Of a DNA stretch of 64,000 bases, positions 11,000 through 57,005 are shown one piece after another. Numbering within the stretch: position 1 is the stretch's first letter; the number at the start of each line of letters is the position of its first letter. The DNA lies in the NCBI GenBank assembly GCA_964057225.1, contig OZ059894.1:11098001-11162000 (forward strand), read 5' to 3'. The notes below the pieces were generated by a model. That model saw only the letters and a list, made by a program, of their open reading frames with translations, was not told the origin of the DNA and did no database searches. This DNA comes from Auanema rhodensis. Taxonomy: Eukaryota; Animalia; Nematoda. The translations under genes were made by a program, and so were the position numbers.

Positions 11000-12179
11000 A
11001 CAGTAAAAAGTCCAATCAAGAGAGAAATTTTTTCAACACATAGTTGTTTTTTTTTTAAATATCATTGTTTTTCCTCATAACTCGGTTTAAACTCGTTCTA
11101 ACCCGTTGAAATACGTCTAGAAAGTCTTTATAACATGCATATGTATGATAGAACTTCATATTTATTGTAATAGAAAATTTTATTTTCAGACGTCTTGGTT
11201 AACAATGATATGTTTTACCCCCTTATAATTTTTATCATAATGTTCCTTATACGGAACGCTCAATGAAACTTGCTTCCAGAAAAATTTCTTTCTATTTTTT
11301 CTTCATATGTACGTAGATACTATAGAGAACTATGATAGAAAACTTTAACATTCACGAAATCATCATTTCTCATTACGCTACGGAGGTTTAAAAAGCTGTG
11401 TTTTACCTTATAATAGACCGGAAAACCCTTGTGTTAAAACTGGACCGTTTTTACACATATAAAAATGTCCCGTATTCGGGACCCTAATGTAACTTTTGAT
11501 TCCCTATATTTTTTTTCATGAAATTTACAATCTACTGTAGAAAGAAGAATTATTTTTATAAAAACTGTAAATTTTTGAAAAATGAAAACAAAACGAAAAC
11601 AAAAACAACTTTTTTTTGAACATTTTCTCACACAAGGGTCCCCCCTTACCTACTTTTTTTCTCATTACTCGTTTCAACCTCATCCGATCACTCTGCAAAC
11701 ATGTTTAATCGTTCTAACTTGTTGAAATACGTCTTAAAAGTCTAAACAACATGCATATGCATAATAGAAACCACCCGAATAGGCCCCCACGCACTAAACG
11801 AGATATATACATTACCAGTATAGTAATAGAACACATATTGAAGATTAATTCGATAAGAACAATTTATTGACGTAGAGAATGTTTGTTCTGAAAAACTACA
11901 ATATTAAACTATAAAAGTAACAAAAGCGTAGAGGCAGCAAAGACATGAATAAACATAAATGTAAATACAGAATTACCAGGTAGTACATAAGTATGACAAA
12001 AAATTATAAGAAAGCCATGAAAATAGAAGGTTTGTGAACAAATGAGAGGTACATCTTTGATCGTATAGTCATTTCTAAACCGTTCGTATGCTGCAGCATC
12101 GTCATAAGCGTCACTCAAGTTGAATTTCCATGTGTACTACACGATTTTCATTCTTATTGTTACATTCTTTCCCTGAGGG

Positions 12180-12326
12180 AATGGGCCGTTCCCGCCAGCA
12201 GTGCAAGAGCGGGTCGACCCGTGAGGTGGAGCTAGCAAGCCAGCATCTACCTCAAGTCTCAAAAATCGGTTAACCTTATTGTGAACCAATGGAACACATA
12301 TCGAAGGTTAATTCGATAAGAACGAT
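12180..12326 (-). pseudogene. U2: U2 3' part (nt 40-186), interrupted by non-LTR copy 1
   Basis: U2 identity ends at gaacgat|ggtttattg. Confidence 0.93.
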
Positions 12327-15300
12327 GGTTTATTGAATAAATAATGTTATGATACAATAAATAACCAATAAAAAAGAGCCCAGAATCGGGGAGACGGTAT
12401 TACCAGTACAACTTAAAACAGCAAGTGATTAAAAAGTACAAAATAAAACACATTACCAACAGAGGCTAAAACGACTCAAGAGTCGGGGGAGTGGGTTAAA
12501 AAAAGTAATGAATAACAAAAAAATGAATAATAAAGCAGAACAGTGAAAAGTAAATATCAAGTGCCGCTATGATCAAACAATTTGAGTGCCTACGGCAATG
12601 GTGTTAAAAATAAACAACAAAATACATGTACCAATGAAGGTCAGAAGGAAAGAGAAAAAAAAAAAAAAAAAAAAAAAGACCAAAATAAGTAATACAAAAA
12701 GTAAACACATTACAATCGAATCACAAACAAGTCAATGGATAATTTCTTCTTCATACTGCCTTACACCAGAAACATGTTCCACGTAGATATTCCTGGCCCA
12801 CTTGATGGTATCGGCGACGATGAGCTTCTCCATTAGCCGGTTGTAGTGGCTGCTGATCTTGAGTGATCGGAGGGCTTGTCCGTTGAGCGGGTCCATAGTT
12901 CCAAGCGTTCCTACGACATACGCTTCTACACTAGTCTTATAACCAAGACATTGGTATTGGCTGGCTATGTCAGCATATTTCCTCTCCTTTATCATACGCG
13001 CGGCTATCATGGCTTGTCGGCGGTTTTCATAGCTCACTGTAACATCAACGATACTACAGTGTTTTGCGTCATGATCGACCACTACTATGTCAGGTCGGAG
13101 TGTACTATTAATGCCAGGAAGTGGCTGGTTAGTGTAAACTTCTCCGTTTTTAGGCTCTGGCAGGGCTTTGATAAGACGGTCCACGATGTTGTTGTGGCGG
13201 AGTTGGATTGCTCTCGTGTGAAAGTGGCAGTGTCCAAGAACATGTGCAGCAGTTTCGTTGGGGTAACTACACCTGCGGCACTGTTTGTTTCCTTCTCCGT
13301 GTCTTCTACAGCCATTGAGCTGGAGAGTATTAAGTCGAGCCTTGTGGATGAATCGCCAATCAGCAAACCGTATGAAATCTCCCTTCGCCATAAAGTGATT
13401 GGACGCTTTGTTGAGCATTGTGACATCAAAGACTTTCCCTTGATCCGGTTTTTGAAGAAGGATCCGAAGGTCTTTCAGCCATAATGCACGTCGCAGGCTT
13501 CTGTGGCATAGTGAAGGTGTTAACAGTTGGTTGTTTAGATTGAGTTCTAAACCACTTTCGAGGCATGTCCAGTTAGCGTTGATGAGTTTCTTGAGTTGAC
13601 GCATCGCTACTCTTACTCTAGTCCAGATGGAGGAAACATCAGATGTTTCGGTGTCGAAAATGCCATCAACGGAACCGTTGTAATATGCAGCTGTCTCATC
13701 GTTACTGGCTTGACGTTTAATCCTTTTTGATGCTACTTTTTTTGAGTCTTGATGCGCAATATCAGCTACTACAAGATCAGATGACTTCAAAAGTTGGTAG
13801 GCATGAGTGACTTCACAGACGTCTGACAGGTGTTGGAGTCGAGAGAGACCAAGTCCGCCGTAGTTAGTTGGCAGGTAGATTGGTTCAGCACTGGCGTTTG
13901 GAGGATAGTGCATCCATCTACGGGCACAGCGTTTGAGTTCTTTGTCAAAGGCGACCAGTTTACTCTTTGGGACGTGGCCATTCGTCATATGAAAATTAAG
14001 GCAGGGCATCAGGAAGGTGCGTACTGCGTCAGCTTTCTGCCATTCAGCAAGTAAGGATTTGTCAATTTTTTCCAAGTGTTGACTCATAATATTCACTGTT
14101 GGAACCGCAGACTTATGTAAATGCATTCCAGTAGGGATTCCCAGGTGGGAGTAGCTGTCGAATTTGCTGAGAGCGGGTAGAGAGGAGCTCTGTAGCATGT
14201 ATGAGGCTGTTGATATTTTCCCTTTGTCGATCGTCAAGGTGGCGCATTTCGCTGGTTTGAAGGTCAAGCCTGTGAAATTAGCCGCATTTGATGCTGCGTC
14301 CAACATTTTCTGTAGATCTTCTGATGATGAGGAGATCAGGGCAAGGTCATCGGCGTACGCTAGCACAGCGATGTTGTGGTTGTGTAGCTTATAGCCAGTA
14401 GAGGATTCCAAGATGGTTTTAATTAGAGGTTCAATGGCAAGGTTGAACAGGATCGGAGATAGTGGGGATCCTTGTAACACACCTGCATGAACTGGAATGG
14501 TCGATGTGAGTCCGGAGCCTGTCTGGATTCTTGTAGAGGCATCTGTGTATAGAGCTCGTACTCGGGATATTGAGGCTTCAGCCACTCCTGACCATCTTAG
14601 AACGTCTAGCAGAGTTTCGTGTGGCAGCGATCCAAAAGCGTTTGCGAGATCAAGCCAAGCAATTGCAATTTTCTCACGTTTACGTTTAGCGTCCGCAATG
14701 GTACTTTGCAACATAAAGTTGTGTTCCATGCATCCAGCTTTGGCCACAAAGCCCTTTTGGGAGGGAGAAAGTCTTTTTTCTGCTCTTGCCCATGTTAGCA
14801 GTCGATGCGTAAGACAAGCTGAGTACGTCTTACCAATTGTGCACGAAAGTGCTATTGGTCGCCAGTTGTTAATGTCAGCTTTATCACCTTTCTTATGGAT
14901 GAGGACGGTGGTCGACTCTTTCCAGGAAAAAGGGATGTGTCCTAGCTTGTGTACGGTGTTAAATATCGCTGCTAATATGTGACCTCCTTGGTCAAATTTC
15001 TTCCAGTGCGAGTATCGAAGTCCATCAGCTCCTGGAGCCGTATCGCTGCAACGTCGTATGCGTTCCCAGACTTCCAAAGGGGTGAAAACACCTTCTAATG
15101 GGTCGGTACTAGCTGGCAAATCCGGTCTGGTGACTGTGATGGGGAGGGCTGGGCCTTGACTGCTGTGAACAGAAAGGAAATGTTTTTCAACCTCTGCAGA
15201 TGGTATGGTGCAGGTTTCACTTTGTTCTCCGAGCAGTTGTCGAAAGGCTTTCTTCTTGTTGGCCCTCCAGAGCTTCTGGAGCTTCATCGCCTGGGTTTTT

Positions 15301-16062
15301 TGGTCTTCCTCAGGTTGTGTGTGTGGTCGGCGCCTTTGTCGGAAGTTGGGAACTTTGATCATAATGTCAAGAGACTTTCTGATTGCGTCTACCAACTCTT
15401 CCAGGACCTGCTCGAGCTCACTTTTGCACACAACCTTTTTAATTCTATCCACCCAAGTATTTTCAGAGTTTCTATTCGGATCAGGGTCGGCAAAAGATGG
15501 TTCTGTACTCGGAACCCTGATCTCGTTGAATATTTCACTCTCTCGCGGAAGGGGGGAAACTTCGGCCTCTGGGGACAAGTCCAGAATTGGGGCCTCAAAC
15601 AAGCGTACCGTTGATGGAGATCCTTGTTCCTGTCCACTGGATGATGTTTCCTCCATTGTACGCTCCTCCACGGGCGGGGTGGTCGTCCTTGTGCCTGGTG
15701 GGCGGGTGTTCCTGATCCTCCGCAATATAGGGCGGGAACTGGGCTCTCTCGGAGATAGAGGTGAGATCACCACAGTTTCCTCTATGATGCGGAGGCATCC
15801 TTCAGCTTTTTTCTGATGGCTTTTAACGGCCTTCAGATTGCTGGTGAGGCCACAGGCACGGCACTCAAATTCTACTCCGACCTCATGTTCTCTCCGAAGA
15901 TGGCGGACGAGACCATTGTGGTCTGAGTAGGATCGCGGAATAGGAGCGCAGATTGAACAAGAAAAAGGCCTCTGAAGAGGCACCTTTAGCTTGTAAAGCC
16001 CTTGCTCCATCTCTAGCAGATCTAAAGACTTACGTAGTACAGTTGCAATATCGATTTAGCCA
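12327..16062 (-). mobile_element. U2-specific RLE non-LTR retrotransposon (Utopia/NeSL-like), copy 1, full length
   Basis: Inserted next to the U2 branch-point recognition sequence GTAGTA; single ORF with ZnF, RT and RLE; 3' UTR ends TTCAATAAACC(AT), no poly(A). Confidence 0.92.
12732..16010 (-). CDS. Non-LTR retrotransposon protein: 2 N-terminal Zn fingers, RT (YADD), CCHC knuckle, restriction-like endonuclease
   Basis: CSIC..H..H and CRAC; APGADG, NWRPIAL, WLDLANAFGSL, GVLQGSPLSPILF, YADD; CRRC-ETAAHVLGHC; RHN..PD..D..K..KY. Confidence 0.96.
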   Translation of the reverse strand: MEQGLYKLKVPLQRPFSCSICAPIPRSYSDHNGLVRHLRREHEVGVEFECRACGLTSNLKAVKSHQKKAEGCLRIIEETVVISPLSPREPSSRPILRRIRNTRPPGTRTTTPPVEERTMEETSSSGQEQGSPSTVRLFEAPILDLSPEAEVSPLPRESEIFNEIRVPSTEPSFADPDPNRNSENTWVDRIKKVVCKSELEQVLEELVDAIRKSLDIMIKVPNFRQRRRPHTQPEEDQKTQAMKLQKLWRANKKKAFRQLLGEQSETCTIPSAEVEKHFLSVHSSQGPALPITVTRPDLPASTDPLEGVFTPLEVWERIRRCSDTAPGADGLRYSHWKKFDQGGHILAAIFNTVHKLGHIPFSWKESTTVLIHKKGDKADINNWRPIALSCTIGKTYSACLTHRLLTWARAEKRLSPSQKGFVAKAGCMEHNFMLQSTIADAKRKREKIAIAWLDLANAFGSLPHETLLDVLRWSGVAEASISRVRALYTDASTRIQTGSGLTSTIPVHAGVLQGSPLSPILFNLAIEPLIKTILESSTGYKLHNHNIAVLAYADDLALISSSSEDLQKMLDAASNAANFTGLTFKPAKCATLTIDKGKISTASYMLQSSSLPALSKFDSYSHLGIPTGMHLHKSAVPTVNIMSQHLEKIDKSLLAEWQKADAVRTFLMPCLNFHMTNGHVPKSKLVAFDKELKRCARRWMHYPPNASAEPIYLPTNYGGLGLSRLQHLSDVCEVTHAYQLLKSSDLVVADIAHQDSKKVASKRIKRQASNDETAAYYNGSVDGIFDTETSDVSSIWTRVRVAMRQLKKLINANWTCLESGLELNLNNQLLTPSLCHRSLRRALWLKDLRILLQKPDQGKVFDVTMLNKASNHFMAKGDFIRFADWRFIHKARLNTLQLNGCRRHGEGNKQCRRCSYPNETAAHVLGHCHFHTRAIQLRHNNIVDRLIKALPEPKNGEVYTNQPLPGINSTLRPDIVVVDHDAKHCSIVDVTVSYENRRQAMIAARMIKERKYADIASQYQCLGYKTSVEAYVVGTLGTMDPLNGQALRSLKISSHYNRLMEKLIVADTIKWARNIYVEHVSGVRQYEEEIIH

Positions 16063-16156
16063 TTAACCTTATTGTGAACCAATGGAACACATATCGAAGG
16101 TTAATTCGATAAGAACGATTACTACACTTTGATCTTAGCCAAAAGGCCGAGAAGCG
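16063..16156 (-). pseudogene. U2: U2 nt 3-96 leader at the 5' end of non-LTR copy 1
   Basis: Exact U2 match; nt 1-2 and 32 bp of upstream DNA are deleted. Confidence 0.93.
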
Positions 16157-16566
16157 CAAATGTATCGTCCTTGTTACGAGTGCACTCTCTCATTTGAATA
16201 TAAAAGTGTGGTTTGACAATCTTGACTGTACAGGTCATAAATGGCTCATATAAACTGTGGATTTACTCAACTTTTGGACTTATTTTTTTCTTATTCGAAG
16301 CGCTGCACTTTTTTCTATTCTTTTTATTCAAATACTTGTATATAGTTTTATATGTACGGTTGCAAAGTTTCCGAATATTTTATATATTTTTATACAATAA
16401 TTAGGAGAAGGTTAATACAATGAAATCTCCCAACTTTACAGTGTTTGTATTGCTTACAGTATCTAGAACAACCACTCTTGTAATATTAGAGCACATATCA
16501 ATCAACAACTTTTTCTAGTTATCAAAGCTTTTTTATTTCTTCAAGATATTTCAAATAAAATATAAA

Positions 16567-19518: not shown

Positions 19519-20870
19519 AATGTCATATTCTTCATTATCAGTTATATCACTCTAAATCTTGTTGTTAATAGATACGACCACAAAGAAAACAACAGGAACA
19601 GTAACAATAACAAAAAAAATTTTTTTTTCACCTATGTGTCTAAAGGTTAGCCATGTATCCGTTTATATATATATATATATATATATATCAACAGTAAAAA
19701 GTCCAATCAAGAGAGAAATTTTTTCAACACATAGTTGTTTTTTTTTTAAATATCATTGTTTTTCCTCATAACTCGGTTTAAACTCGTTCTAACCCGTTGA
19801 AATACGTCTAGAAAGTCTTTATAACATGCATATGTATGATAGAACTTCATATTTATTGTAATAGAAAATTTTATTTTCAGACGTCTTGGTTAACAATGAT
19901 ATGTTTTACCCCCTTATAATTTTTATCATAATGTTCCTTATACGGAACGCTCAATGAAACTTGCTTCCAGAAAAATTTCTTTCTATTTTTTCTTCATATG
20001 TACGTAGATACTATAGAGAACTATGATAGAAAACTTTAACATTCACGAAATCATCATTTCTCATTACGCTACGGAGGTTTAAAAAGCTGTGTTTTACCTT
20101 ATAATAGACCGGAAAACCCTTGTGTTAAAACTGGACCGTTTTTACACATATAAAAATGTCCCGTATTCGGGACCCTAATGTAACTTTTGATTCCCTATAT
20201 TTTTTTTCATGAAATTTACAATCTACTGTAGAAAGAAGAATTATTTTTATAAAAACTGTAAATTTTTGAAAAATGAAAACAAAACGAAAACAAAAACAAC
20301 TTTTTTTCGAACATTTTCTCACACAAGGGTCCCCCCTTACCTACTTTTTTTCTCATTACTCGTTTCAACCTCATCCGATCACTCTGCAAACATGTTTAAT
20401 CGTTCTAACTTGTTGAAATACGTCTTAAAAGTCTAAACAACATGCATATGCATAATAGAAACCACCCGAATAGGCCCCCACGCACTAAACGAGATATATA
20501 CATTACCAGTATAGTAATAGAACACATATTGAAGATTAATTCGATAAGAACAATTTATTGACGTAGAGAATGTTTGTTCCGAAAAACTACAATATTAAAC
20601 TATAAAAGTAACAAAAGCGTAGAGGCAGCAAAGACATGAATAAACATAAATGTAAATACAGAATTACCAGGTAGTACATAAGTATGACAAAAAATTATAA
20701 GAAAGCCATGAAAATAGAAGGTTTGTGAACAAATGAGAGGTACATCTTTGATCGTATAGTCATTTCTAAACCGTTCGTATGCTGCAGCATCGTCATAAGC
20801 GTCACTCAAGTTGAATTTCCATGTGTACTACACGATTTTCATTCTTATTGTTACATTCTTTCCCTGAGGG

Positions 20871-21056
20871 AATGGGCCGTTCCCGCCAGCAGTGCAAGAG
20901 CGGGTCGACCCGTGAGGTGGAACTAGCAAGCCAGCATCTACCTCAAGTCTCAAAAATCGGTTAACCTTATTGTGAACCAATGGAACACATATCGAAGGTT
21001 AATTCGATAAGAACGATTACTACACTTTGATCTTAGCCAAAAGGCCGAGAAGCGAT
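20871..21056 (-). ncRNA. U2: U2 snRNA (one substitution in stem III)
   Basis: Full copy; + strand ggaactagc instead of ggagctagc. Confidence 0.95.
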
Positions 21057-22161: not shown

Positions 22162-23341
22162 ACAGTAAAAAGTCCAATCAAGAGAGAAATTTTTTCAACA
22201 CATAGTTGTTTTTTTTTTAAATATCATTGTTTTTCCTCATAACTCGGTTTAAACTCGTTCTAACCCGTTGAAATACGTCTAGAAAGTCTTTATAACATGC
22301 ATATGTATGATAGAACTTCATATTTATTGTAATAGAAAATTTTATTTTCAGACGTCTTGGTTAACAATGATATGTTTTACCCCCTTATAATTTTTATCAT
22401 AATGTTCCTTATACGGAACGCTCAATGAAACTTGCTTCCAGAAAAATTTCTTTCTATTTTTTCTTCATATGTACGTAGATACTATAGAGAACTATGATAG
22501 AAAACTTTAACATTCACGAAATCATCATTTCTCATTACGCTACGGAGGTTTAAAAAGCTGTGTTTTACCTTATAATAGACCGGAAAACCCTTGTGTTAAA
22601 ACTGGACCGTTTTTACACATATAAAAATGTCCCGTATTCGGGACCCTAATGTAACTTTTGATTCCCTATATTTTTTTTCATGAAATTTACAATCTACTGT
22701 AGAAAGAAGAATTATTTTTATAAAAACTGTAAATTTTTGAAAAATGAAAACAAAACGAAAACAAAAACAACTTTTTTTTGAACATTTTCTCACACAAGGG
22801 TCCCCCCTTACCTACTTTTTTTCTCATTACTCGTTTCAACCTCATCCGATCACTCTGCAAACATGTTTAATCGTTCTAACTTGTTGAAATACGTCTTAAA
22901 AGTCTAAACAACATGCATATGCATAATAGAAACCACCCGAATAGGCCCCCACGCACTAAACGAGATATATACATTACCAGTATAGTAATAGAACACATAT
23001 TGAAGATTAATTCGATAAGAACAATTTATTGACGTAGAGAATGTTTGTTCCGAAAAACTACAATATTAAACTATAAAAGTAACAAAAGCGTAGAGGCAGC
23101 AAAGACATGAATAAACATAAATGTAAATACAGAATTACCAGGTAGTACATAAGTATGACAAAAAATTATAAGAAAGCCATGAAAATAGAAGGTTTGTGAA
23201 CAAATGAGAGGTACATCTTTGATCGTATAGTCATTTCTAAACCGTTCGTATGCTGCAGCATCGTCATAAGCGTCACTCAAGTTGAATTTCCATGTGTACT
23301 ACACGATTTTCATTCTTATTGTTACATTCTTTCCCTGAGGG

Positions 23342-23490
23342 AATGGGCCGTTCCCGCCAGCAGTGCAACAGCGGGTCGACCCGTGAGGTGGAGCTAGCAA
23401 GCCAGCATCTACCTCAAGTCTCAAAAATCGGTTAACCTTATTGTGAACCAATGGAACACATATCGAAGGTTAATTCGATAAGAACGATTA
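23342..23490 (-). pseudogene. U2: U2 3' part (nt 38-186), interrupted by non-LTR copies 2 and 3
   Basis: Junction gaacgatta|atggtttattg. Confidence 0.93.
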
Positions 23491-26400
23491 ATGGTTTATT
23501 GAATAACTAATGTTATGATACAATAAATAACCAATAAAAAAGAGCCCAGAATCGGGGAGACGGTATTACCAGTACAACTTAAAACAGCAAGTAATTAAAA
23601 AGTACATAATAAGACACATTGCCAACAGAGGCTAAAACGACTCAAGAGTCGGGGGAGTGGGTTAAAAAAAAATGAACAAAAAAAATGAATATTAAAGCAG
23701 AACAATGAGAAATCAAGTGCCGCTATGATCAAACAATTTGAGTGCCTACGGCAATGATGTTAAAAATAAACAACAAAATACATGTACCAATGAAGGTCAG
23801 AAAGAAAGAAACAAAAGACAAAATAAGTAATACAAAAAGTAAATACATTACAATCAAATCACAAACAAGTCAATTGATAATTTCTTCTTCATATTGCCTT
23901 ACACCAGAAACATGTTCCACGTAGATATTCCTGGCCCACTTGATGGTATCGGCGACGACGAGCTTCTCCATTAGCCGGTTGTAGTGGCTGCTGATCTTGA
24001 GTGATCGGAGGGCTTGTCCGTTGAGCGGGTCCATAGTTCCAAGCATTCCTACGACATACGCTTCTACACTAGTCTTATAACCAAGACATTGGTATTGGCT
24101 GGCTATGTCAGCATATTTCCTCTCCTTTATCATACGCGCGGCTATCATGGCTTGACGGCGGTTTTCATAGCTCACTGTAACATCAACGATACTACAGTGT
24201 TTTGCGTCATGATCGACCACTACTATGTCAGGTCGGAGTGTACTATTAATGCCAGGAAGAGGCTGGTTAGTGTAAACTTCTCCGTTTTTAGGCTCTGGCA
24301 GGGCTTTGATAAGACGGTCCACGATGTTGTTGTGGCGGAGTTGGATTGCTCTCGTGTGAGAGTGGCAGTGTCCAAGAACATGTGCAGCAGTTTCGTTGGA
24401 GTAACTACACCTGCGGCACTGTTTGTTTCCTTCTCCGTGTCTTCTACAGCCATTGAGCTGGAGAGTATTGAGTCGAGCCTTGTGGATGAATCGCCAATCA
24501 GCAAACCGTATGAAATCTCCCTTCGCCATAAAGTGATTGGACGCTTTGTTGAGCATTGTGACATCAAAGACTTTCCCTTGATCCGGTTTTTGAAGAAGGA
24601 TCCGAAGGTCTTTCAGCCATAATGCACGTCGCAGGCTTCTGTGGCATAGTGAAGGTGTTAACAGTTGGTTGTTTAGATTGAGTTCTAAACCACTTTCGAG
24701 GCATGTCCAGTTAGCGTTGATGAGTTTCTTGAGTTGACGCATCGCTACTCTTACTCTAGTCCAGATGGAGGAAACATCAGATGTTTCGGTGTCGAAAATG
24801 CCATCAACGGAACCGTTGTAATATGCAGCTGTCTCATCGTTACTGGCTTGACGTTTAATCCTTTTTGATGCTACTTTTTTTGAGTCTTGATGCGCAATAT
24901 CAGCTACTACAAGATCAGATGACTTCAAAAGTTGGTAGGCATGAGTGACTTCACAGACGTCTGACAGGTGTTGGAGTCGAGAGAGACCAAGTCCGCCGTA
25001 GTTAGTTGGCAGGTAGATTGGTTCAGCACTGGCGTTTGGAGGATAGTGCATCCATCTACGGGCACAGCGTTTGAGTTCTTTGTCAAAGGCGACTAGTTTA
25101 CTCTTTGGGACGTGGCCATTCGTCATATGAAAATTAAGGCAGGGCATCAGGAAGGTGCGTACTGCGTCAGCTTTCTGCCATTCAGCAAGTAAGGATTTGT
25201 CAATTTTTTCCAAGTGTTGACTCATAATATTCACTGTTGGAACCGCAGACTTATGTAAATGCATTCCAGTAGGGATTCCCAGGTGGGAGTAGCTGTCAAA
25301 TTTGCTAAGAGCGGGTAGAGAGGAGCTCTGTAGCATGTATGAGGCTGTTGATATTTTCCCTTTGTCGATCGTCAAGGTGGCGCATTTCGCTGGTTTGAAG
25401 GTCAAGCCTGTGAAATTAGCCGCATTTGATGCTGCGTCCAACATTTTCTGTAGATCTTCTGATGATGAGGAGACCAGGGCAAGGTCATCGGCGTACGCTA
25501 GCACAGCGATGTTGTGGTTGTGTAGCTTATAGCCTGTAGAGGTTTCCAAGATGGTTTTAATTAGAGGTTCAATGGCAAGGTTGAACAGGATCGGAGATAG
25601 TGGGGATCCTTGTAACACACCTGCGTGAACTGGAATGGTCGAAGTGAGTCCGGAGCCTGTCTGGATTCTTGTAGAGGCATCTGTGTATAGAGCTCGTACT
25701 CGGGATATTGAGGCTTCAGCCATTCCTGACCATCTTAGAACGTCTAGCAGAGTTTCGTGTGGCAGCGATCCAAAAGCGTTTGCGAGATCAAGCCAAGCAA
25801 TTGCAATTTTCTCACGTTTACGTTTAGCGTCCGCAATGGTACTTTGCAACATAAAGTTGTGTTCCATGCATCCAGCTTTGGCCACAAAGCCCTTTTGGGA
25901 GGGAGAAAGTCTTTTTTCTGCTCTTGCCCATGTTAGCAGTCGATGCGTAAGACAAGCTGAGTACGTCTTACCAATTGTGCACGAAAGTGCTATTGGTCGC
26001 CAGTTGTTAATGTCAGCTTTATCACCTTTCTTATGGATGAGGACGGTGGTCGACTCTTTCCAGGAAAAAGGGATGTGTCCTAGCTTGTGTACGGTGTTAA
26101 ATATCGCTGCTAATATGTGACCTCCTTGGTCAAATTTCTTCCAGTGCGAGTATCGAAGTCCATCAGCTCCTGGAGCCGTATCGCTGCAACGTCGTATGCG
26201 TTCCCAGACTTCCAAAGGGGTGAAAACACCTTCTAGTGGGTCGGTACTAGCTGGCAAATCCGGTCTGGTGACTGTGATGGGGAGGGCTGGGCCTTGACTG
26301 CTGTGAACAGAAAGGAAGTGTTTTTCAACCTCTGCAGATGGTATGGTGCAGGTTTCACTTTGTTCTCCGAGCAGTTGTCGAAAGGCTTTCTTCTTGTTGG

Positions 26401-27200
26401 CCCTCCAAAGCTTCTGGAGCTTCATCGCCTGGGTTTTTTGGTCTTCCTCAGGTTGTGTGTGTGGTCGGCGCCTTTGTCGGAAGTTGGGAACTTTGATCAT
26501 AATGTCAAGAGACTTTCTGATTGTGTCTACCAACTCTTCCAGGACCTGCTCGAGCTCACTTTTGCACACTACCTTTTTAATTCTATCCACCCAAATATTT
26601 TCAGAGTTTCTATTCGGATCAGGGTCGGCAAAAGATGGTTCTGTACTCGGAACCCTGATCTCGTTGAATATTTCACTCTCTCGCGGAAGGGGGGAAACTT
26701 CGGCCTCTGGGGACAAGTCCAGAATTGGGGCCTCAAACAAGCGTACCGTTGATGGAGATCCTTGTTCCTGTCCACTGGATGATGTTTCCTCCATTGTACG
26801 CTCCTCCACGGGCGGGGTGGTCGTCCTTGTGCCTGGTGGGCGGGTGTTCCTGATCCTCCGCAATATAGGGCGGGAACTGGGCTCTCTCGGAGATAGAGGT
26901 GAGATCACCACAGTTTCCTCTATGATGCGGAGACATCCTTCAGCTTTTTTCTGATGGCTTTTAACGGCCTTCAGATTGCTGGTGAGGCCACAGGCACGGC
27001 ACTCAAATTCTACTCTGACCTCATGTTCTCTCCGAAGATGGCGGACGAGACCATTGTGGTCTGAGTAGGATCGCGGAATAGGAGCGCAGATTGAACACGA
27101 AAAAGGGCTCTGAAGAGGCACCTTTAGCTTGTAAAGCCCTTGCTCCATCTCTAGCAGATCTAAAGACTTACGTAGTACAGTTGCAATATCGATTTAGCCA
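23491..27200 (-). mobile_element. U2-specific non-LTR retrotransposon, copy 2
   Basis: Near-identical to copy 1, same target. Confidence 0.92.
23870..27148 (-). CDS. Non-LTR RT/RLE protein, 1092 aa
   Basis: Intact ORF, same motifs as copy 1. Confidence 0.96.
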   Translation of the reverse strand: MEQGLYKLKVPLQSPFSCSICAPIPRSYSDHNGLVRHLRREHEVRVEFECRACGLTSNLKAVKSHQKKAEGCLRIIEETVVISPLSPREPSSRPILRRIRNTRPPGTRTTTPPVEERTMEETSSSGQEQGSPSTVRLFEAPILDLSPEAEVSPLPRESEIFNEIRVPSTEPSFADPDPNRNSENIWVDRIKKVVCKSELEQVLEELVDTIRKSLDIMIKVPNFRQRRRPHTQPEEDQKTQAMKLQKLWRANKKKAFRQLLGEQSETCTIPSAEVEKHFLSVHSSQGPALPITVTRPDLPASTDPLEGVFTPLEVWERIRRCSDTAPGADGLRYSHWKKFDQGGHILAAIFNTVHKLGHIPFSWKESTTVLIHKKGDKADINNWRPIALSCTIGKTYSACLTHRLLTWARAEKRLSPSQKGFVAKAGCMEHNFMLQSTIADAKRKREKIAIAWLDLANAFGSLPHETLLDVLRWSGMAEASISRVRALYTDASTRIQTGSGLTSTIPVHAGVLQGSPLSPILFNLAIEPLIKTILETSTGYKLHNHNIAVLAYADDLALVSSSSEDLQKMLDAASNAANFTGLTFKPAKCATLTIDKGKISTASYMLQSSSLPALSKFDSYSHLGIPTGMHLHKSAVPTVNIMSQHLEKIDKSLLAEWQKADAVRTFLMPCLNFHMTNGHVPKSKLVAFDKELKRCARRWMHYPPNASAEPIYLPTNYGGLGLSRLQHLSDVCEVTHAYQLLKSSDLVVADIAHQDSKKVASKRIKRQASNDETAAYYNGSVDGIFDTETSDVSSIWTRVRVAMRQLKKLINANWTCLESGLELNLNNQLLTPSLCHRSLRRALWLKDLRILLQKPDQGKVFDVTMLNKASNHFMAKGDFIRFADWRFIHKARLNTLQLNGCRRHGEGNKQCRRCSYSNETAAHVLGHCHSHTRAIQLRHNNIVDRLIKALPEPKNGEVYTNQPLPGINSTLRPDIVVVDHDAKHCSIVDVTVSYENRRQAMIAARMIKERKYADIASQYQCLGYKTSVEAYVVGMLGTMDPLNGQALRSLKISSHYNRLMEKLVVADTIKWARNIYVEHVSGVRQYEEEIIN

Positions 27201-27259
27201 TTAACCTTATTGTGAACCAATGGAACACATATCGAAGGTTAATTCGATAAGAACGATTA
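27201..27259 (-). pseudogene. U2: U2 nt 38-96 fragment between tandem non-LTR copies 2 and 3
   Basis: Exact 59-bp U2 match. Confidence 0.93.
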
Positions 27260-30200
27260 ATGGTTTATTGAATAACTAATGTTATGAAACAATAAATAAC
27301 CAATAAAAAAGAGCCCAGAATCGGGGAGACGGTATTACCAGTACAACTTAAAACAGCAAGTGATTAAAAAGTACAAAATAAAACACATTACCAACAGAGG
27401 CTAAAACGACTCAAGAGTCGGGGGAGTGGGTTAAAAAAAGTAATGAATAACAAAAAAAATGAATAATAAAGCAGAACAGTGAAAAGTAAATATCAAGTGC
27501 CGCTATGATCAAACAATTTGAGTGCCTACGGCAATGGTGTTAAAAATAAACAACAAAATACATGTACCAATGAAGGTCAGAAAGAGAGAAAGAAAAAAGA
27601 CAAAAATAAGTAATACAAAAAGTAAAAAATATATTACAATCAAATCACAAACAAGTCAATGGATAATTTCTTCTTCATACTGCCTTACACCAGAAACATG
27701 TTCCACGTAGATATTCCTGGCCCACTTGATGGTATCGGCGACGACGAGCTTCTCCATTAGCCGGTTGTAGTGGCTGCTGATCTTGAGTGATCGGAGGGCT
27801 TGTACGTTGAGCGGGTCCATAGTTCCAAGCATTCCTACGACATACGCTTCTACACTAGTCTTATAACCAAGACATTGGTATTGGCTGGCTATGTCAGCAT
27901 ATTTCCTCTCCTTTATCATACGCGCGGCTATCATGGCTTGTCGGCGGTTTTCATAGCTCACTGTAACATCAACGATACTACAGTGTTTTGCGTCATGATC
28001 GACCACTACTATGTCAGGTCGGAGTGTACTATTAATGCCAGGAAGAGGCTGGTTAGTGTAAACTTCTCCGTTTTTAGGCTCTGGCAGGGCTTTGATAAGA
28101 CGGTCCACGATGTTGTTGTGGCGGAGTTGGATTGCTCTCGTGTGAAAGTGGCAGTGTCCAAGAACATGTGCAGCAGTTTCGTTGGGGTAACTACACCTGC
28201 GGCACTGTTTGTTTCCTTCTCCGTGTCTTCTACAGCCATTGAGCTGGAGAGTATTAAGTCGAGCCTTGTGGATGAATCGCCAATCAGCAAACCGTATGAA
28301 ATCTCCCTTCGCCATAAAGTGATTGGACGCTTTGTTGAGCATTGTGACATCAAAGACTTTCCCTTGATCCGGTTTTTGAAGAAGGATCCGAAGGTCTTTC
28401 AGCCATAATGCACGTCGCAGGCTTCTGTGGCATAGTGAAGGTGTTAACAGTTGGTTGTTTAGATTGAGTTCTAAACCACTTTCGAGGCATGTCCAGTTAG
28501 CGTTGATGAGTTTCTTGAGTTGACGCATCGCTACTCTTACTCTAGTCCAGATGGAGGAAACATCAGATGTTTCGGTGTCGAAAATGCCATCAACGGAACC
28601 GTTGTAATATGCAGCTGTCTCATCGTTACTGGCTTGACGTTTAATCCTTTTTGATGCTACTTTTATTGAGTCTTGATGCGCAATATCAGCTACTACAAGA
28701 TCAGATGACTTCAAAAGTTGGTAGGCATGAGTGACTTCACAGACGTCTGACAGGTGTTGGAGTCGAGAGAGACCAAGTCCGCCGTAGTTGGTTGGCAGGT
28801 AGATTGGTTCAGCACTGGCGTTTGGAGGATAGTGCATCCATCTACGGGCACAGCGTTTGAGTTCTTTGTCAAAGGCGACTAGTTTACTCTTTGGGACGTG
28901 GCCATTCGTCATATGAAAATTAAGGCAGGGCATCAGGAAGGTGCGTACTGCGTCAGCTTTCTGCCATTCAGCCAGTAAGGATTTGTCAATTTTTTCCAAG
29001 TGTTGACTCATGATATTCACTGTTGGAACCGCAGACTTATGTAAATGCATTCCAGTAGGGATTCCCAGGTGGGAGTAGCTGTCAAATTTGCTGAGAGCGG
29101 GTAGAAAGCAGCTCTGAAGCATGTATGAGGCTGTTGATATTTTCCCTTTGTCGATCGTCAAAGTGGCGCATTTCGCTGGTTTGAAGGTCAAGCCTGTGAA
29201 ATTAGCCGCATTTGATGCTGCGTCCAACATTTTCTGTAGATCTTCTGATGATGAGGAGACCAGGGCAAGGTCATCGGCGTACGCTAGCACAGCGATGTTG
29301 TGATTGTGTAGCTTATAGCCTGTAGAGGTTTCCAAGATGGTTTTAATTAGAGGTTCAATGGCAAGGTTGAACAGGATCGGAGATAGTGGGGATCCTTGTA
29401 ACACACCTGCGTGAACTGGAATGGTCGAAGTGAGTCCGGAGCCTGTCTGGATTCTTGTAGAGGCATCTGTGTATAGAGCTCGTACTCGGGATATTGAGGC
29501 TTCAGCCATTCCTGACCATCTTAGAACGTCTAGCAGAGTTTCGTGTGGCAGCGATCCAAAAGCGTTTGCGAGATCAAGCCAAGCAATTGCAATTTTCTCA
29601 CGTTTACGTTTAGCGTCTGCAATGGTACTTTGCAACAAAAAGTTGTGTTCCATGCATCCAGCTTTGGCCACAAAGCCCTTTTGGGAGGGAGAAAGTCTTT
29701 TTTCTGCTCTTGCCCATGTTAGCAGTCGATGCGTAAGACAAGCTGAGTACGTCTTACCAATTGTGCACGAAAGTGCTATTGGTCGCCAGTTGTTAATGTC
29801 AGCTTTATCACCTTTCTTATGGATGAGGACGGTGGTCGACTCTTTCCAGGAAAAAGGGATGTGTCCTAGCTTGTGTACGGTGTTAAATATCGCTGCTAAT
29901 ATGTGACCTCCTTGGTCAAATTTCTTCCAGTGCGAGTATCGAAGTCCATCAGCTCCTGGAGCCGTATCGCTGCAACGTCGTATGCGTTCCCAGACTTCCA
30001 AAGGGGTGAAAACACCTTCTAATGGGTCGGTACTAGTTGGCAAATCCGGTCTGGTGACTGTGATGGGGAGGGCTGGGCCTTGACTGCTGTGAACAGAAAG
30101 GAAGTGTTTTTCAACATCTGCAGATGGTATGGTGCAGGTTTCACTTTGTTCTCCGAGCAGTTGTCGAAAGGCTTTCTTCTTGTTGGCCCTCCAAAGCTTC

Positions 30201-30986
30201 TGGATCTTCATCGCCTGGGTTTTTTGGTCTTCCTCAGGTTGTGTGTGTGGTCGGCGCCTTTGTCGGAAGTTGGGAACTTTGATCATAATGTCAAGAGACT
30301 TTCTGATTGTGTCTACCAACTCTTCCAGGACCTGCTCGAGCTCACTTTTGCACACTACCTTTTTAATTCTATCCACCCAAATATTTTCAGAGTTTCTATT
30401 CGGATCAGGGTCGGCAAAAGATGGTTCTGTACTCGGAACCCTGATCTCGTTGAATATTTCACTCTCTCGCGGAAGGGGGGAAACTTCGGCCTCTGGGGAC
30501 AAGTCCAGAATTGGGGCCTCAAACAAGCGTACCGTTGATGGAGATCCTTGTTCCTGTCCACTGGATGATGTTTCCTCCATTGTACGCTCCTCCACGGGCG
30601 GGGTGGTCGTCCTTGTGCCTGGTGGGCGGGTGTTCCTGATCCTCCGCAATATAGGGCGGGAACTGGGCTCTCTCGGAGATAGAGGTGAGATCACCACAGT
30701 TTCCTCTATGATGCGGAGACATCCTTCAGCTTTTTTCTGATGGCTTTTAACGGCCTTCAGATTGCTGGTGAGGCCACAGGCACGGCACTCAAATTCTACT
30801 CTGACCTCATGTTCTCTCCGAAGATGGCGGACGAGACCATTGTGGTCTGAGTAGGATCGCGGAATAGGAGCGCAGATTGAACACGAAAAAGGGCTCTGAA
30901 GAGGCACCTTTAGCTTGTAAAGCCCTTGCTCCATCTCTAGCAGATCTAAAGACTTACGTAGTACAGTTGCAATATCGATTTAGCCA
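27260..30986 (-). mobile_element. U2-specific non-LTR retrotransposon, copy 3 (tandem with copy 2)
   Basis: Near-identical; separated from copy 2 by U2 nt 38-96. Confidence 0.92.
27656..30934 (-). CDS. Non-LTR RT/RLE protein, 1092 aa
   Basis: Intact ORF. Confidence 0.96.
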   Translation of the reverse strand: MEQGLYKLKVPLQSPFSCSICAPIPRSYSDHNGLVRHLRREHEVRVEFECRACGLTSNLKAVKSHQKKAEGCLRIIEETVVISPLSPREPSSRPILRRIRNTRPPGTRTTTPPVEERTMEETSSSGQEQGSPSTVRLFEAPILDLSPEAEVSPLPRESEIFNEIRVPSTEPSFADPDPNRNSENIWVDRIKKVVCKSELEQVLEELVDTIRKSLDIMIKVPNFRQRRRPHTQPEEDQKTQAMKIQKLWRANKKKAFRQLLGEQSETCTIPSADVEKHFLSVHSSQGPALPITVTRPDLPTSTDPLEGVFTPLEVWERIRRCSDTAPGADGLRYSHWKKFDQGGHILAAIFNTVHKLGHIPFSWKESTTVLIHKKGDKADINNWRPIALSCTIGKTYSACLTHRLLTWARAEKRLSPSQKGFVAKAGCMEHNFLLQSTIADAKRKREKIAIAWLDLANAFGSLPHETLLDVLRWSGMAEASISRVRALYTDASTRIQTGSGLTSTIPVHAGVLQGSPLSPILFNLAIEPLIKTILETSTGYKLHNHNIAVLAYADDLALVSSSSEDLQKMLDAASNAANFTGLTFKPAKCATLTIDKGKISTASYMLQSCFLPALSKFDSYSHLGIPTGMHLHKSAVPTVNIMSQHLEKIDKSLLAEWQKADAVRTFLMPCLNFHMTNGHVPKSKLVAFDKELKRCARRWMHYPPNASAEPIYLPTNYGGLGLSRLQHLSDVCEVTHAYQLLKSSDLVVADIAHQDSIKVASKRIKRQASNDETAAYYNGSVDGIFDTETSDVSSIWTRVRVAMRQLKKLINANWTCLESGLELNLNNQLLTPSLCHRSLRRALWLKDLRILLQKPDQGKVFDVTMLNKASNHFMAKGDFIRFADWRFIHKARLNTLQLNGCRRHGEGNKQCRRCSYPNETAAHVLGHCHFHTRAIQLRHNNIVDRLIKALPEPKNGEVYTNQPLPGINSTLRPDIVVVDHDAKHCSIVDVTVSYENRRQAMIAARMIKERKYADIASQYQCLGYKTSVEAYVVGMLGTMDPLNVQALRSLKISSHYNRLMEKLVVADTIKWARNIYVEHVSGVRQYEEEIIH

Positions 30987-31082
30987 TTAACCTTATTGTG
31001 AACCAATGGAACACATATCGAAGGTTAATTCGATAAGAACGATTACTACACTTTGATCTTAGCCAAAAGGCCGAGAAGCGAT
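30987..31082 (-). pseudogene. U2: U2 nt 1-96 leader with intact upstream region, fused to non-LTR copy 3
   Basis: Exact U2 match continuing into the normal upstream spacer. Confidence 0.93.
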
Positions 31083-32418: not shown

Positions 32419-32518
32419 TCGTAGAAAATCCGAGTTGACAAGAAATCACTTGTCAAGAAACAATAAGACGATAAAAATATCGCTGAATCTGAAATATCCA
32501 TTGAGGAAGGCTAAAATA

Positions 32519-41830: not shown

Positions 41831-42160
41831 TGTCACGGTCAACGTGAAAATACGAACTTTATTGTGTTAACGTTTTGTTTGTATTTTTTGTATTAACTCC
41901 ACCCCCTTTAACCATCTGGTGCCTCCCTATAAAAGGGAGAACCAAATGGTTAAAATTTTTATGTCTCACCAATTTTGTATTGATTTTAGAATTTTCTTGG
42001 AAATTCTAAAATCAATCCACTTGTTAACTTTACTGTTGTTGCATTTGTTGAATAAACCTTTCTTCATTTAACTTGTCTTAACGCATAATACCGCACTCAT
42101 ACGAACCGACTCCATACTTGGACTGATACTTGGAGGTAAAAGTTCAGTTGTCAAGCGACA
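41831..42160 (+). repeat. 3' LTR
   Basis: Identical by eye to 31941-32270. Confidence 0.97.
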
Positions 42161-42228
42161 GGCCCAACGTTGCTTGACTTGCCAGATCGGACGGGATGGC
42201 GTACTTTCAACGTGGTATGGTCGTAAGC
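42161..42228 (-). pseudogene. 5S: 5S rRNA 5' part (nt 1-68), split by BEL element 1
   Basis: Starts gcgaca|ggcccaacg. Confidence 0.95.
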
Positions 42229-47394: not shown

Positions 47395-48574
47395 ACAGTA
47401 AAAAGTCCAATCAAGAGAGAAATTTTTTCAACACATAGTTGTTTTTTTTTTAAATATCATTGTTTTTCCTCATAACTCGGTTTAAACTCGTTCTAACCCG
47501 TTGAAATACGTCTAGAAAGTCTTTATAACATGCATATGTATGATAGAACTTCATATTTATTGTAATAGAAAATTTTATTTTCAGACGTCTTGGTTAACAA
47601 TGATATGTTTTACCCCCTTATAATTTTTATCATAATGTTCCTTATACGGAACGCTCAATGAAACTTGCTTCCAGAAAAATTTCTTTCTATTTTTTCTTCA
47701 TATGTACGTAGATACTATAGAGAACTATGATAGAAAACTTTAACATTCACGAAATCATCATTTCTCATTACGCTACGGAGGTTTAAAAAGCTGTGTTTTA
47801 CCTTATAATAGACCGGAAAACCCTTGTGTTAAAACTGGACCGTTTTTACACATATAAAAATGTCCCGTATTCGGGACCCTAATGTAACTTTTGATTCCCT
47901 ATATTTTTTTTCATGAAATTTACAATCTACTGTAGAAAGAAGAATTATTTTTATAAAAACTGTAAATTTTTGAAAAATGAAAACAAAACGAAAACAAAAA
48001 CAACTTTTTTTTGAACATTTTCTCACACAAGGGTCCCCCCTTACCTACTTTTTTTCTCATTACTCGTTTCAACCTCATCCGATCACTCTGCAAACATGTT
48101 TAATCGTTCTAACTTGTTGAAATACGTCTTAAAAGTCTAAACAACATGCATATGCATAATAGAAACCACCCGAATAGGCCCCCACGCACTAAACGAGATA
48201 TATACATTACCAGTATAGTAATAGAACACATATTGAAGATTAATTCGATAAGAACAATTTATTGACGTAGAGAATGTTTGTTCCGAAAAACTACAATATT
48301 AAACTATAAAAGTAACAAAAGCGTAGAGGCAGCAAAGACATGAATAAACATAAATGTAAATACAGAATTACCAGGTAGTACATAAGTATGACAAAAAATT
48401 ATAAGAAAGCCATGAAAATAGAAGGTTTGTGAACAAATGAGAGGTACATCTTTGATCGTATAGTCATTTCTAAACCGTTCGTATGCTGCAGCATCGTCAT
48501 AAGCGTCACTCAAGTTGAATTTCCATGTGTACTACACGATTTTCATTCTTATTGTTACATTCTTTCCCTGAGGG

Positions 48575-48723
48575 AATGGGCCGTTCCCGCCAGCAGTGCA
48601 AGAGCGGGTCGACCCGTGAGGTGGAGCTAGCAAGCCAGCATCTACCTCAAGTCTCAAAAATCGGTTAACCTTATTGTGAACCAATGGAACACATATCGAA
48701 GGTTAATTCGATAAGAACGATTA
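48575..48723 (-). pseudogene. U2: U2 3' part (nt 38-186), interrupted by non-LTR copy 4
   Basis: Same junction as copy 2. Confidence 0.93.
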
Positions 48724-52433: not shown

Positions 52434-52527
52434 TTAACCTTATTGTGAACCAATGGAACACATATCGAAGGTTAATTCGATAAGAACGATTACTACACTT
52501 TGATCTTAGCCAAAAGGCCGAGAAGCG
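52434..52527 (-). pseudogene. U2: U2 nt 3-96 leader of non-LTR copy 4
   Basis: Exact U2 match, then joined to spacer ~1.26 kb further upstream. Confidence 0.93.
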
Positions 52528-56856: not shown

Positions 56857-57005
56857 AATGGGCCGTTCCCGCCAGCAGTGCAAGAGCGGGTCGACCCGTG
56901 AGGTGGAGCTAGCAAGCCAGCATCTACCTCAAGTCTCAAAAATCGGTTAACCTTATTGTGAACCAATGGAACACATATCGAAGGTTAATTCGATAAGAAC
57001 GATTA
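56857..57005 (-). pseudogene. U2: U2 3' part (nt 38-186), interrupted by truncated non-LTR copy 5
   Basis: Same junction as copy 2. Confidence 0.93.

Follow-up and report, generated by a model that had tools for sequence, protein, structure and literature searches.

We identify in this 64-kb stretch of DNA, hereafter the window, a retrotransposon of U2 snRNA genes whose template is probably (we would put it at about 0.8) a chimeric RNA that starts at the U2 start and carries a fixed head of U2 nt 1–96. Behind this head lie a 52-nt 5' UTR, an ORF of 1092 aa and a 3' UTR of ~400 nt. Copies were censused in a contiguous 260 kb, at 30 loci of 3.2 kb and by pattern counts, within an array of 1.3 Mb. 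The features of the window on which the argument draws are as follows.

20867–21056 (−): intact reference U2 gene, recognized by an Rfam match over the full U2 model; source of the U2 numbering
16062–12327 (−): copy A, full-length element
16063–16156 (−): copy A, U2 leader, nt 3–96, fused upstream to array spacer
16011–16062 (−): copy A, element-specific 5' UTR of 52 nt, beginning TGGCTAAATCG
12732–16010 (−): copy A, intact ORF of 1092 aa with N-terminal zinc fingers, reverse transcriptase (RT), CCHC finger and PD-(D/E)xK restriction-like endonuclease (RLE)
12327–12731 (−): copy A, 3' UTR, ending ...TTCAATAAACC(AT)
12176–12326 (−): copy A, downstream target remnant, U2 nt 40–190
52434–52528 (−): copy B, U2 leader, nt 2–96, fused to upstream repeat unit position 1215
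48724–52433 (−): copy B, element body, intact ORF at 49103–52381
48571–48723 (−): copy B, downstream U2 nt 38–190
30987–31082 (−): copy C, U2 leader, nt 1–96, with the native U2 promoter upstream
27260–30986 (−): copy C, element body, intact ORF at 27656–30934
27201–27259 (−): U2 nt 38–96 separating tandem copies C and D
23491–27200 (−): copy D, element body, intact ORF at 23870–27148
23338–23490 (−): copy D, downstream U2 nt 38–190
57006–59005 (−): copy E, 5'-truncated, starting ~1.7 kb into the element
53704–54486 (−): F, a 783-bp non-coding element, with U2 nt 1–79 (54565–54487) before it and nt 39–190 (53703–53552) after it

The 5' junction of the four full-length copies in the window (A, B, C and D) reads ...AAGGTTAA|TGGCTAAATCG, with U2 nt 96, the A preceding CCGAUUUUUG, as the last U2 nucleotide and the ATG 52 nt downstream. 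This identity of the junction, first noted in a preliminary description of the window, extends to the whole genome, where U2 nt 83–96 precedes the element start in 47 of 47 occurrences in a pattern count. The head thus defined ends ahead of the Sm site AUUUUUG (nt 100–106); it is structured, and its nt 67–90 form a uORF of 7 codons. The 5' UTR of copy A contains UACUAC, complementary to the GUAGUA of U2, together with GUAAGU and UUUAG; its 3' UTR has an AATAAA 4–6 nt from the end and no poly(A) tail. At the other end, copies B, C, D and E share the junction ...AATAAACCAT|TAATCG at U2 nt 38, the position at which U2 resumes in 15 of 16 copies in the contiguous 260 kb, while the junction of copy A, ...AATAAACCATCGTTC, is ambiguous and falls at nt 40–42. 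With the 5' junction at nt 96, these 3' junctions yield a repeat of 57–59 bp around full-length copies, which agrees with the preliminary description, nt 38 being the usual 3' position and nt 40–42 that of copy A. At least three subfamilies, 1.5–1.8% divergent, are present, all with intact ORFs, and within the 260 kb 7 of 7 ORFs are intact.

Judged by its sequence, the element belongs to the R2-like non-LTR retrotransposons of the Utopia type and is specific for U2 snRNA genes, an assignment that follows from an R2-like protein in which an RT is combined with a CCHC finger and an endonuclease of the restriction-like type. Pfam places RVT_1 at aa 371–593 of the ORF product, and R2 structures align to aa 237–771 (RT) and aa 903–1051 (CCHC and RLE) with an E value of 4e-69; the latter segment contains the motifs CRRC...H...C, RHN and PD...D.TV..E, and the N-terminus has C2H2-like fingers. 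The Pfam search returned only RVT_1 and a weak zf-RVT match, and no Myb domain, the lack of which separates Utopia from R2 (PMC13188248). The single ORF with N-terminal fingers, RT, CCHC finger and PD-(D/E)xK endonuclease and the fixed U2 3' junction, with downstream U2 from nt 38/39, are likewise those of Utopia. Homologues at 38–44% identity include proteins from Centruroides (scorpion), from Logan contigs and from Dendroctonus ponderosae, a listed Utopia host. U2 with a junction at nt 39 flanks the relatives at one scorpion locus and in two Logan contigs, and the scorpion and Logan relatives have duplications of 17–20 bp; at the D. ponderosae locus, only a downstream U2 motif was found. The closest relative, at 55% identity in a soil metagenome contig, has no recognizable U2 in its 5' part, and exact-protein look-ups of three ORF variants in public assemblies gave no match.

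To assign the 57–59-bp repeat either to the element or to its target, we turn to the 5'-truncated copies. The preliminary description had named truncated copies bearing the repeat as one observation that would speak against an element-borne leader; neither the repeat nor upstream U2 1–96 occurs at any of eight truncated junctions, whereas a staggered cut should duplicate the target irrespective of 5' truncation. At the clean truncated junctions U2 breaks off at nt 38/39, suggestive of a near-blunt cut, and the truncated flanks as a whole comprise U2 1–38, 1–38/39, 1–20, 1–2 followed by T15, 1–87, or larger deletions; one flank reaches a pseudo-38 through a 7-nt microhomology. Copy E starts at position 1736 of the reference stretch (window 16070–12340, −), is joined to unit position 941, lacks upstream U2 38–96 and hence the duplication, and is followed by U2 38–190 at 57005–56853. 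The copy with upstream U2 1–87, a 50-bp duplication, counts against an RNA-borne head, since that model requires an extra internal deletion to produce it.

The 5' ends of the leaders themselves point to where the template RNA begins. The leader starts at nt 4 or earlier in 33 copies, of which 23 have the exact native promoter in front of U2 1–96. Ten complete-leader copies are promoter-less; seven of these were read and resolve into five independent events, the other three being left out, as were three copies whose leader lacks nt 4–20 and which lie outside all classes read. The leader begins at nt 3 in copy A (joined to unit position 2428), at nt 2 in copy B (position 1215), L010 (position 1366) and the segmental duplicates L025/L029 (after position 475, with ~9 extra T), and at nt 1 in the segmental duplicates L026/L028 (position 901). 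All five events are same-orientation fusions to an upstream unit with 0–2 nt of microhomology, and they have deleted 31 bp to 2 kb of target, promoter included. In copy A, U2 nt 1–2 are missing together with 31 bp of promoter-proximal DNA, and in copy B ~1.24 kb with both 5S genes and the U2 promoter; neither leader has a U2 promoter upstream. If breakpoints were random, the chance of five out of five falling within the first 4 nt of a 96-nt leader would be ~1e-7. Leader starts at nt 1–3 in at least five independent copies thus appear to be the footprint of cDNA that reached the RNA 5' end at U2 +1, and these DNA junctions, with non-promoter DNA directly upstream, support both the RNA start proposed in the preliminary description and a template whose 5' end carries upstream target sequence. 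In genome-wide pattern counts no copy reads U2 1–38|TGGCT, which argues that no full-length insertion derives from a headless RNA. The 23 precise native junctions are not to be counted as 23 independent events, since many of these copies may have spread by unequal crossing-over within the array.

The F family and the tandems bear on the same question. F has an equally invariant arrangement of its own, with a fixed head of U2 1–79, a 3' site at nt 39 and a 41-bp duplication; if it shares the Utopia enzyme, the head length (nt 79 vs nt 96 at a common 3' site) tracks the element and not one enzyme, and the single duplication length expected per site and enzyme is not observed (59 bp for Utopia, 41 bp for F). 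Five canonical Utopia–Utopia tandems and additional F–Utopia tandems occur. In the window, copy D stands in tandem behind copy C, a member of a different subfamily at 98.6% identity, and for this reason retains only nt 38–96 of its leader; the U2 segment at 27201–27259 is the rest of that leader after C inserted at nt 38. Tandems separated by U2 38–96, with partners from different subfamilies, show that the head is a live, usable target, and together with the exact native promoter in 23 copies they uphold the earlier suggestion that the leader recreates the target.

The repeat could alternatively be a genuine target-site duplication, with the bottom strand cut at nt 37/38, the top strand at nt 96/97, an internal promoter at TGGCT and promoter-less copies that arose by later deletion. 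Kojima & Jurka 2015 (PMC4640811) read Utopia duplications as differences in top-strand cleavage site, and invariant junctions are what site-specific nucleases would leave; the truncated copy with U2 1–87 fits such a cut, and a 59-nt 3' overhang trimmed to the double-strand boundary at nt 38 could mimic the clean truncated junctions. Five independent deletions would, however, all have to end within U2 nt 1–3, U2 1–96 would be expected on truncated copies, and F, which shares the 3' site, would not be expected to have a duplication of 41 bp; on these three grounds we rejected this reading, which we regard as improbable. The extra T runs at U2 nt 2 in L025 and at one truncated 5' end, which resemble non-templated addition to a cDNA end, also weigh against it.

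Still less probable is that a single odd ancestral insertion spread solely by DNA-level amplification, which would leave the invariant junction uninformative about RNA. The elements do lie in a homogenized tandem array, L025/L029 and L026/L028 are segmental duplicates in inverted orientation, and two copies share both flanks and truncation point (position 1102 of the reference stretch). This reading nevertheless fails on the variety of 5' truncation points and of the flanks that go with them, on tandems that join different subfamilies, and on the 7 of 7 ORFs kept intact despite 1.5–1.8% divergence; insertions into one another's heads, F–Utopia included, and the bunching of promoter-less junctions at nt 1–3 are equally at odds with it. 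The least credible alternative, in our judgment, is that the head is added anew at each insertion by a reverse transcriptase that switches from element RNA to mature U2 snRNA. Such switching onto snRNAs has been documented or proposed for L1 and SINEU (PMC4494074) and would also place the U2 5' end at nt 1, yet its point of entry into the acceptor RNA is normally the 3' end or else varies; the fixed junctions at nt 96 (47 of 47) and, in F copies, always at nt 79 led us to discard it, and headless copies are absent as well.

We therefore return to the RNA-borne U2 head and propose the following route of integration. The endonuclease would nick the bottom strand of U2 at nt 37/38, where reverse transcription would begin exactly at the element 3' end, and the top strand would be cut near the same place, without a long stagger. 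The cDNA would end in the complement of U2 1–96, whose nt 1–37 part could anneal to the upstream half of the target and prime the second strand, a step with which the exact copies (23 of 33) are consistent. Promoter and U2 1–96 would thereby be restored in front of the element, and nt 38–96 would constitute a 59-bp pseudo-duplication inherited from RNA. Where annealing fails, the full-length cDNA would be end-joined further upstream, with loss of the promoter and a leader from nt 1–3; the rebuilt U2 1–96 would keep the nt 38 site open to reinsertion and hence to tandems. Of the claims of the preliminary description that underlie this scheme, one held up, namely that the repeat is part of the element rather than the product of a staggered cut (47 of 47 with the same head, none of eight truncated copies with the repeat); a second, that the leader supplies homology for 5' integration, is probably right as well (exact promoter and U2 1–96 in 23 of 33 complete-leader copies).

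From the DNA junctions we infer that the U2 promoter may drive transcription of the element. Translatable RNAs of 3.8 kb are not known from Pol II promoters of the snRNA type, and the structured head with its 7-codon uORF sits uneasily with cap-dependent scanning. Were the RNA SL trans-spliced ahead of the ATG, this would not argue against the leader, because the genomic copies show that the reverse-transcribed template contains it. Omission of the Sm site may serve to avoid Sm assembly, a putative role that is weakened because a read-through transcript would gain the Sm site of the downstream U2 38–190.

The element resembles described Utopia families in its protein architecture, its 3' junction at U2 nt 38/39, its residence in U2 arrays and its occasional tandems (PMC4640811); it differs in the 96-nt head, the 59-bp pseudo-duplication and the evidence for their inheritance. 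Kojima & Jurka 2015 (PMC4640811) report duplications of 0 bp in arthropods and 20 bp in reptiles, and a deletion in oomycetes, and are silent on how Utopia is transcribed and on any U2 head carried by its RNA; for Utopia-1_PPac from Pristionchus pacificus, the 5' boundary seems unsequenced, as its record starts at contig base 1. With R2, the element shares an RLE-type, site-specific mode of insertion, a clearly homologous protein and, probably, both transcription together with the host gene and upstream target sequence at the RNA 5' end. R2 RNA typically keeps ~28 nt of upstream rRNA; once copied into cDNA, this stretch pairs with the target upstream and serves as primer for the second strand (PMC13580325). 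That leader stops at the insertion site, and R2 therefore shows no duplication, whereas the head described here extends 58–59 nt beyond the site. R2 RNA, moreover, is a Pol I product that an HDV-like ribozyme frees from the host transcript; in the present element the 5' end falls at U2 +1, and an Rfam scan of the window at gathering thresholds detected only U2 and 5S and no ribozyme family.

SLACS/CRE elements are likewise RLE-type insertions within a Pol II small-RNA gene (the trypanosomatid spliced-leader RNA), although they differ in clade, host gene and kingdom. SLACS reportedly has a long, 49-bp duplication, according to Aksoy et al. The reported start of its transcription is +1 of the SL RNA gene that it interrupts (PMC3447711). 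In 5' transduction and promoter capture by L1 and SVA, too, a retroelement acquires host sequence from upstream as a 5' part that it passes on, and SINEU elements have U1/U2-derived heads attributed to template switching (PMC4494074); SINEU, however, inserts elsewhere, while the head described here is the element's own target, rebuilt at each insertion. The probable RNA-borne U2 head adds a new variation to a strategy that R2 and SLACS are known to use.

An RNA-borne head would recast, for a site-specific retrotransposon clade that is widespread, the textbook-style equation of duplication with staggered cut. It would also carry over to a Pol II snRNA gene the principle known from R2, by which a template leader homologous to the target primes the second strand. 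The case also suggests that an snRNA promoter may be able to drive a coding RNA of 3.8 kb. A more speculative extension, which we consider rather unlikely, is that all Utopia target-site duplications (~20 bp in reptiles, 17–20 bp in the scorpion and Logan relatives, 41 bp in F and 59 bp here) are inherited U2 heads, and that the head is a functional RNA module, an Sm-less U2 5' domain that pairs with UACUAC in its own 5' UTR. In that case, the pairing might decide whether the RNA acts as template or as (trans-spliced) mRNA, or it might direct the RNP to U2 genes. With its intact ORFs, several subfamilies and a non-coding rider, the array offers a natural test system for 5' integration by RLE-type elements, which bears on R2-like gene-insertion efforts, and its promoter-less, dead-on-arrival copies preserve within the array the frequency with which the proposed homology step fails. 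The window also contains an env-bearing LTR element.

In this 181-Mb genome, the window spans G000:C1:11098001-11162000 and is a minus-strand tandem array. Each 2459-bp repeat unit contains a single U2 gene, at unit positions 1-190, plus two 5S genes, and retroelements interrupt the U2/5S array. Positions in U2 refer to the intact gene at 21056-20867, in which GUAGUA, the branch-site recognition sequence, spans nt 34-39 and AUUUUUG, the Sm site, lies at nt 100-106. BLAST of the element against the window returned four full-length copies (A, B, C and D) and one 5'-truncated copy, E. The 1092-aa ORF contains RVT_1; solved R2 proteins align to its RT region (aa 237-771, E 4e-69) and also to a C-terminal CCHC finger and restriction-like endonuclease (aa 903-1051), the N-terminus carries C2H2-like fingers, and no Myb domain was found in the ORF. 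Judged from its sequence and its nt 38/39 insertion site, the element fits the definition of Utopia given by Kojima & Jurka 2015 (PMC4640811). The Pristionchus Utopia family that those authors list has a record starting at base 1 of its contig, which probably means that the 5' end of this family has not been observed. ORFs are intact in 7/7 full-length copies of a contiguous 260 kb, and these seven fall into at least three subfamilies, 1.5-1.8% apart. A 150-bp stretch at about 10962701-10962849 of G000:C1, the window's contig (positions 42701-42849 of the assembled 260-kb stretch), is only 73% identical to the element ORF and is probably a relic, within the array, of a further Utopia family that diverges from this one.

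The preliminary description had claimed a fixed U2 leader, or head, ending at nt 96, 52 nt before the ATG, and this junction holds well beyond the window. In 4/4 full-length window copies, U2 nt 96 is followed by TGGCTAAATCG and the ATG lies 52 nt later; genome-wide, the first 21 nt of the element occur 47 times, all on the window's contig between 10.94 and 12.22 Mb, with U2 nt 83-96 directly before them in 47/47. At the 3' junction, the element ends ...AATAAACCAT, then continues with U2 from nt 38; in copy A this junction is ambiguous, from nt 40 to 42.

The resulting 59-bp repeat could be read as a staggered-cut target-site duplication, in line with Kojima & Jurka 2015 (PMC4640811), who attribute Utopia duplications to cleavage-site differences, or as part of the element. 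Among the 5'-truncated copies examined, none has U2 1-96 upstream. Upstream they show U2 1-38 followed by 3 extra nt, or U2 1-38/39 (L007); another flank has a spacer GTGTAGT that mimics U2 nt 32-38, others read U2 1-20 plus GG, U2 1-2 plus T15, and U2 1-87, and larger upstream deletions are present in copy E and in a duplicated pair. The clean junctions point to breakage of the top strand near nt 38, the same place as in arthropod Utopia, whose insertions produce no duplication (Kojima & Jurka 2015, PMC4640811). The copy with U2 1-87 needs an internal deletion and is the only observation that fits badly with an inherited head. Genome-wide pattern counts found no headless full-length copy in which U2 1-38 runs directly into TGGCT, so none of the full-length insertions came from a headless RNA.

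To characterize the upstream end of the head, we combined a pattern census of copies with a reading of 7 of the 10 copies that lack the native promoter. The leader is complete from nt 4 or earlier in 33 copies, 23 of which have the exact native promoter upstream. Among the seven copies read, A has its first leader base at nt 3, while B, L010 and L025/L029 have it at nt 2 and L026/L028 at nt 1. Each leader abuts, with no change of orientation, the spacer of the repeat unit upstream; the fusion points are unit positions 2428 (A), 1215 (B), 1366 (L010), 475 (L025/L029) and 901 (L026/L028). These copies represent five independent events, with microhomology of 0-2 nt at the fusion junctions and about nine extra T in L025; target loss ranges from 31 bp to 2 kb, promoter included, while the element-side break always falls at the first bases of U2. 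The chance of five such breaks by random deletion is (4/96)^5, or ~1e-7, and still ~1e-5 if up to four further breakpoints fall inside the head; random deletion would thus not give these junctions. Read from sequence, they are the signature of cDNA that reached the 5' end of an RNA begun at U2 +1 and was then end-joined. The sole break found within the head lies at nt 34, where the head adjoins an inverted element, and counts as one rearrangement:
L024 and L030, G000:C1 about 11299760 and 11234582: inverted element piece, positions 2463-1006 of the reference stretch (window 16070-12340, minus strand), read in reverse
Given head starts that cluster at nt 1-3 and truncated copies without U2 1-96, the 59-bp repeat is best regarded, as first claimed, as part of the element rather than a staggered-cut duplication. 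L024 and L030, which face opposite ways, belong to a large inverted segmental duplication that also includes L025/L029 and L026/L028.

Re-creation of the target by the leader, also claimed at the outset, is borne out by tandem copies. U2 38-96 separates C from D, which belong to different subfamilies, and genome-wide there are five Utopia-Utopia tandems with this exact spacer. Heads of full-length copies also contain insertions, namely F-Utopia tandems, in which F is a second element family in U2 genes, and a 155-nt Utopia fragment. The tandems are most simply read as new insertions into a resident head at its nt 38.

F elements measure 740-790 bp and do not code for protein (no ORF exceeds 59 aa); their ends are conserved and their middle is variable. 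Their 3' junction is at nt 39, the same 3' site as in Utopia, whereas the head always extends to nt 79 (the window copy at 53704-54486 on the minus strand, L012, L013, L019 and one variant that directly follows a full-length Utopia copy within the 260 kb) instead of nt 96, indicating that head length follows the element. The F 3' end, ...TTCAATA, resembles Utopia ...TTCAATAAACCAT, and F probably travels as a rider that uses both the Utopia machinery and the U2 promoter. A related fossil lies in every array-unit spacer:
20505-20599, minus strand (unit positions 458-552): F-type 3' end, then degenerate U2 nt 39-78, then the first ~10 nt of the F 5' end
Its presence in every unit means that an old F-F tandem junction has been homogenised across the array.

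A homology search returned proteins of 38-56% identity from soil metagenomes, Globodera, Diploscapter, many Centruroides loci and Dendroctonus. Relatives residing in U2 genes are:
L052 (Centruroides sculpturatus KZ493963.1), L053 and L054: 38-43% identity, tandem
The scorpion locus has tandem elements separated by U2 39-about 57, one with U2 1-about 56 upstream, and two Logan contigs have U2 heads to about nt 55 and nt 58, the second also with a 3' junction at nt 39. The relatives' 3' junction is at nt 39 where it lies inside the contig (L052, L054), and the same stretch, U2 39-58, lies at both ends of L054, as a tandem array would give. A U2 head extending past the insertion site thus occurs widely in the lineage, and is shorter in relatives.

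We propose that transcription would start at the U2 promoter and read through past nt 96 into the element. After a bottom-strand nick at nt 37/38, reverse transcription would be target-primed from the exact element 3' end; the RNA may extend a few tens of nt into U2 38+ before it ends, giving 3' homology to the primer strand, and the cDNA's terminal complement of U2 1-37 would anneal to the upstream target and prime the second strand. All of these steps, transcription included, are inferred. R2 similarly keeps about 28 nt of upstream rRNA, with cDNA pairing as the favoured second-strand primer (PMC13580325), which resembles the retained target and cDNA annealing proposed here, and SLACS is reported to be transcribed from +1 of its host gene (PMC3447711), as proposed for Utopia in U2. 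The principle is therefore already known from R2 and SLACS; the literature searched yielded no discussion of Utopia transcription or of a U2 head.

In Utopia, as in the scorpion and Logan relatives, AATAAA lies within 4-12 nt of the point where the element meets U2; in F it forms across that junction:
Window 12327-12345, 48724-48745 and 53704-53715: 3' junctions with AATAAA
L052 6850-6870 and L054 5115-5135: 3' junctions with AATAAA
This placement suggests that transcripts are polyadenylated soon after entering the downstream U2 fragment, so that the RNA may end shortly inside U2 38+. Heads end at about nt 55-58 in relatives, 79 in F and 96 in Utopia here, all before nt 100; ends before the Sm site agree weakly with Sm avoidance (by chance roughly P = 0.07), although read-through into the downstream U2 38-190 fragment would give the transcript a Sm site regardless. 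The 5' UTR contains further motifs:
16011-16062, minus strand: 52-nt 5' UTR of copy A, with UACUAC, GUAAGU, and UUUAG 12 nt before the ATG
UACUAC is complementary to U2 GUAGUA, the branch-site recognition sequence and also the insertion site, and in the predicted fold of head plus 5' UTR (z-score only -2.1) it pairs with U2 GUGUAGUA (nt 33-39), while element AUCGAU pairs with U2 nt 47-53 and displaces the native closing helix. With UACUAC 14 nt ahead of it, UUUAG/A resembles a 3' splice site, located 12 nt upstream of the ATG, making a trans-spliced mRNA form possible. This region could serve as a trans-splice acceptor or for self-masking; a trans-spliced mRNA, if formed, would bypass a 7-codon uORF in the head.

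At U2 nt 37-43 (window 21015-21020, minus strand), the gene reads GUAGUAAUCGUU here vs GUAGUAUCUGUU in the Rfam consensus and scorpion U2, a deviation that coincides exactly with the insertion site. The array also contains BEL/Pao elements:
32435-40351, plus strand: BEL/Pao LTR retrotransposon with a 2638-aa ORF
61282-63909, minus strand: second, partial BEL/Pao copy, at the window end
The ORF of the former encodes DUF1759, RT, Peptidase_A17, integrase and DUF5641, to which a phlebovirus-like G2 fusion glycoprotein (env) is attached in frame as a fusion, a combination in keeping with a nematode host. This element breaks the array between about 31940 and 42161, cutting a 5S gene at 42150-42228.
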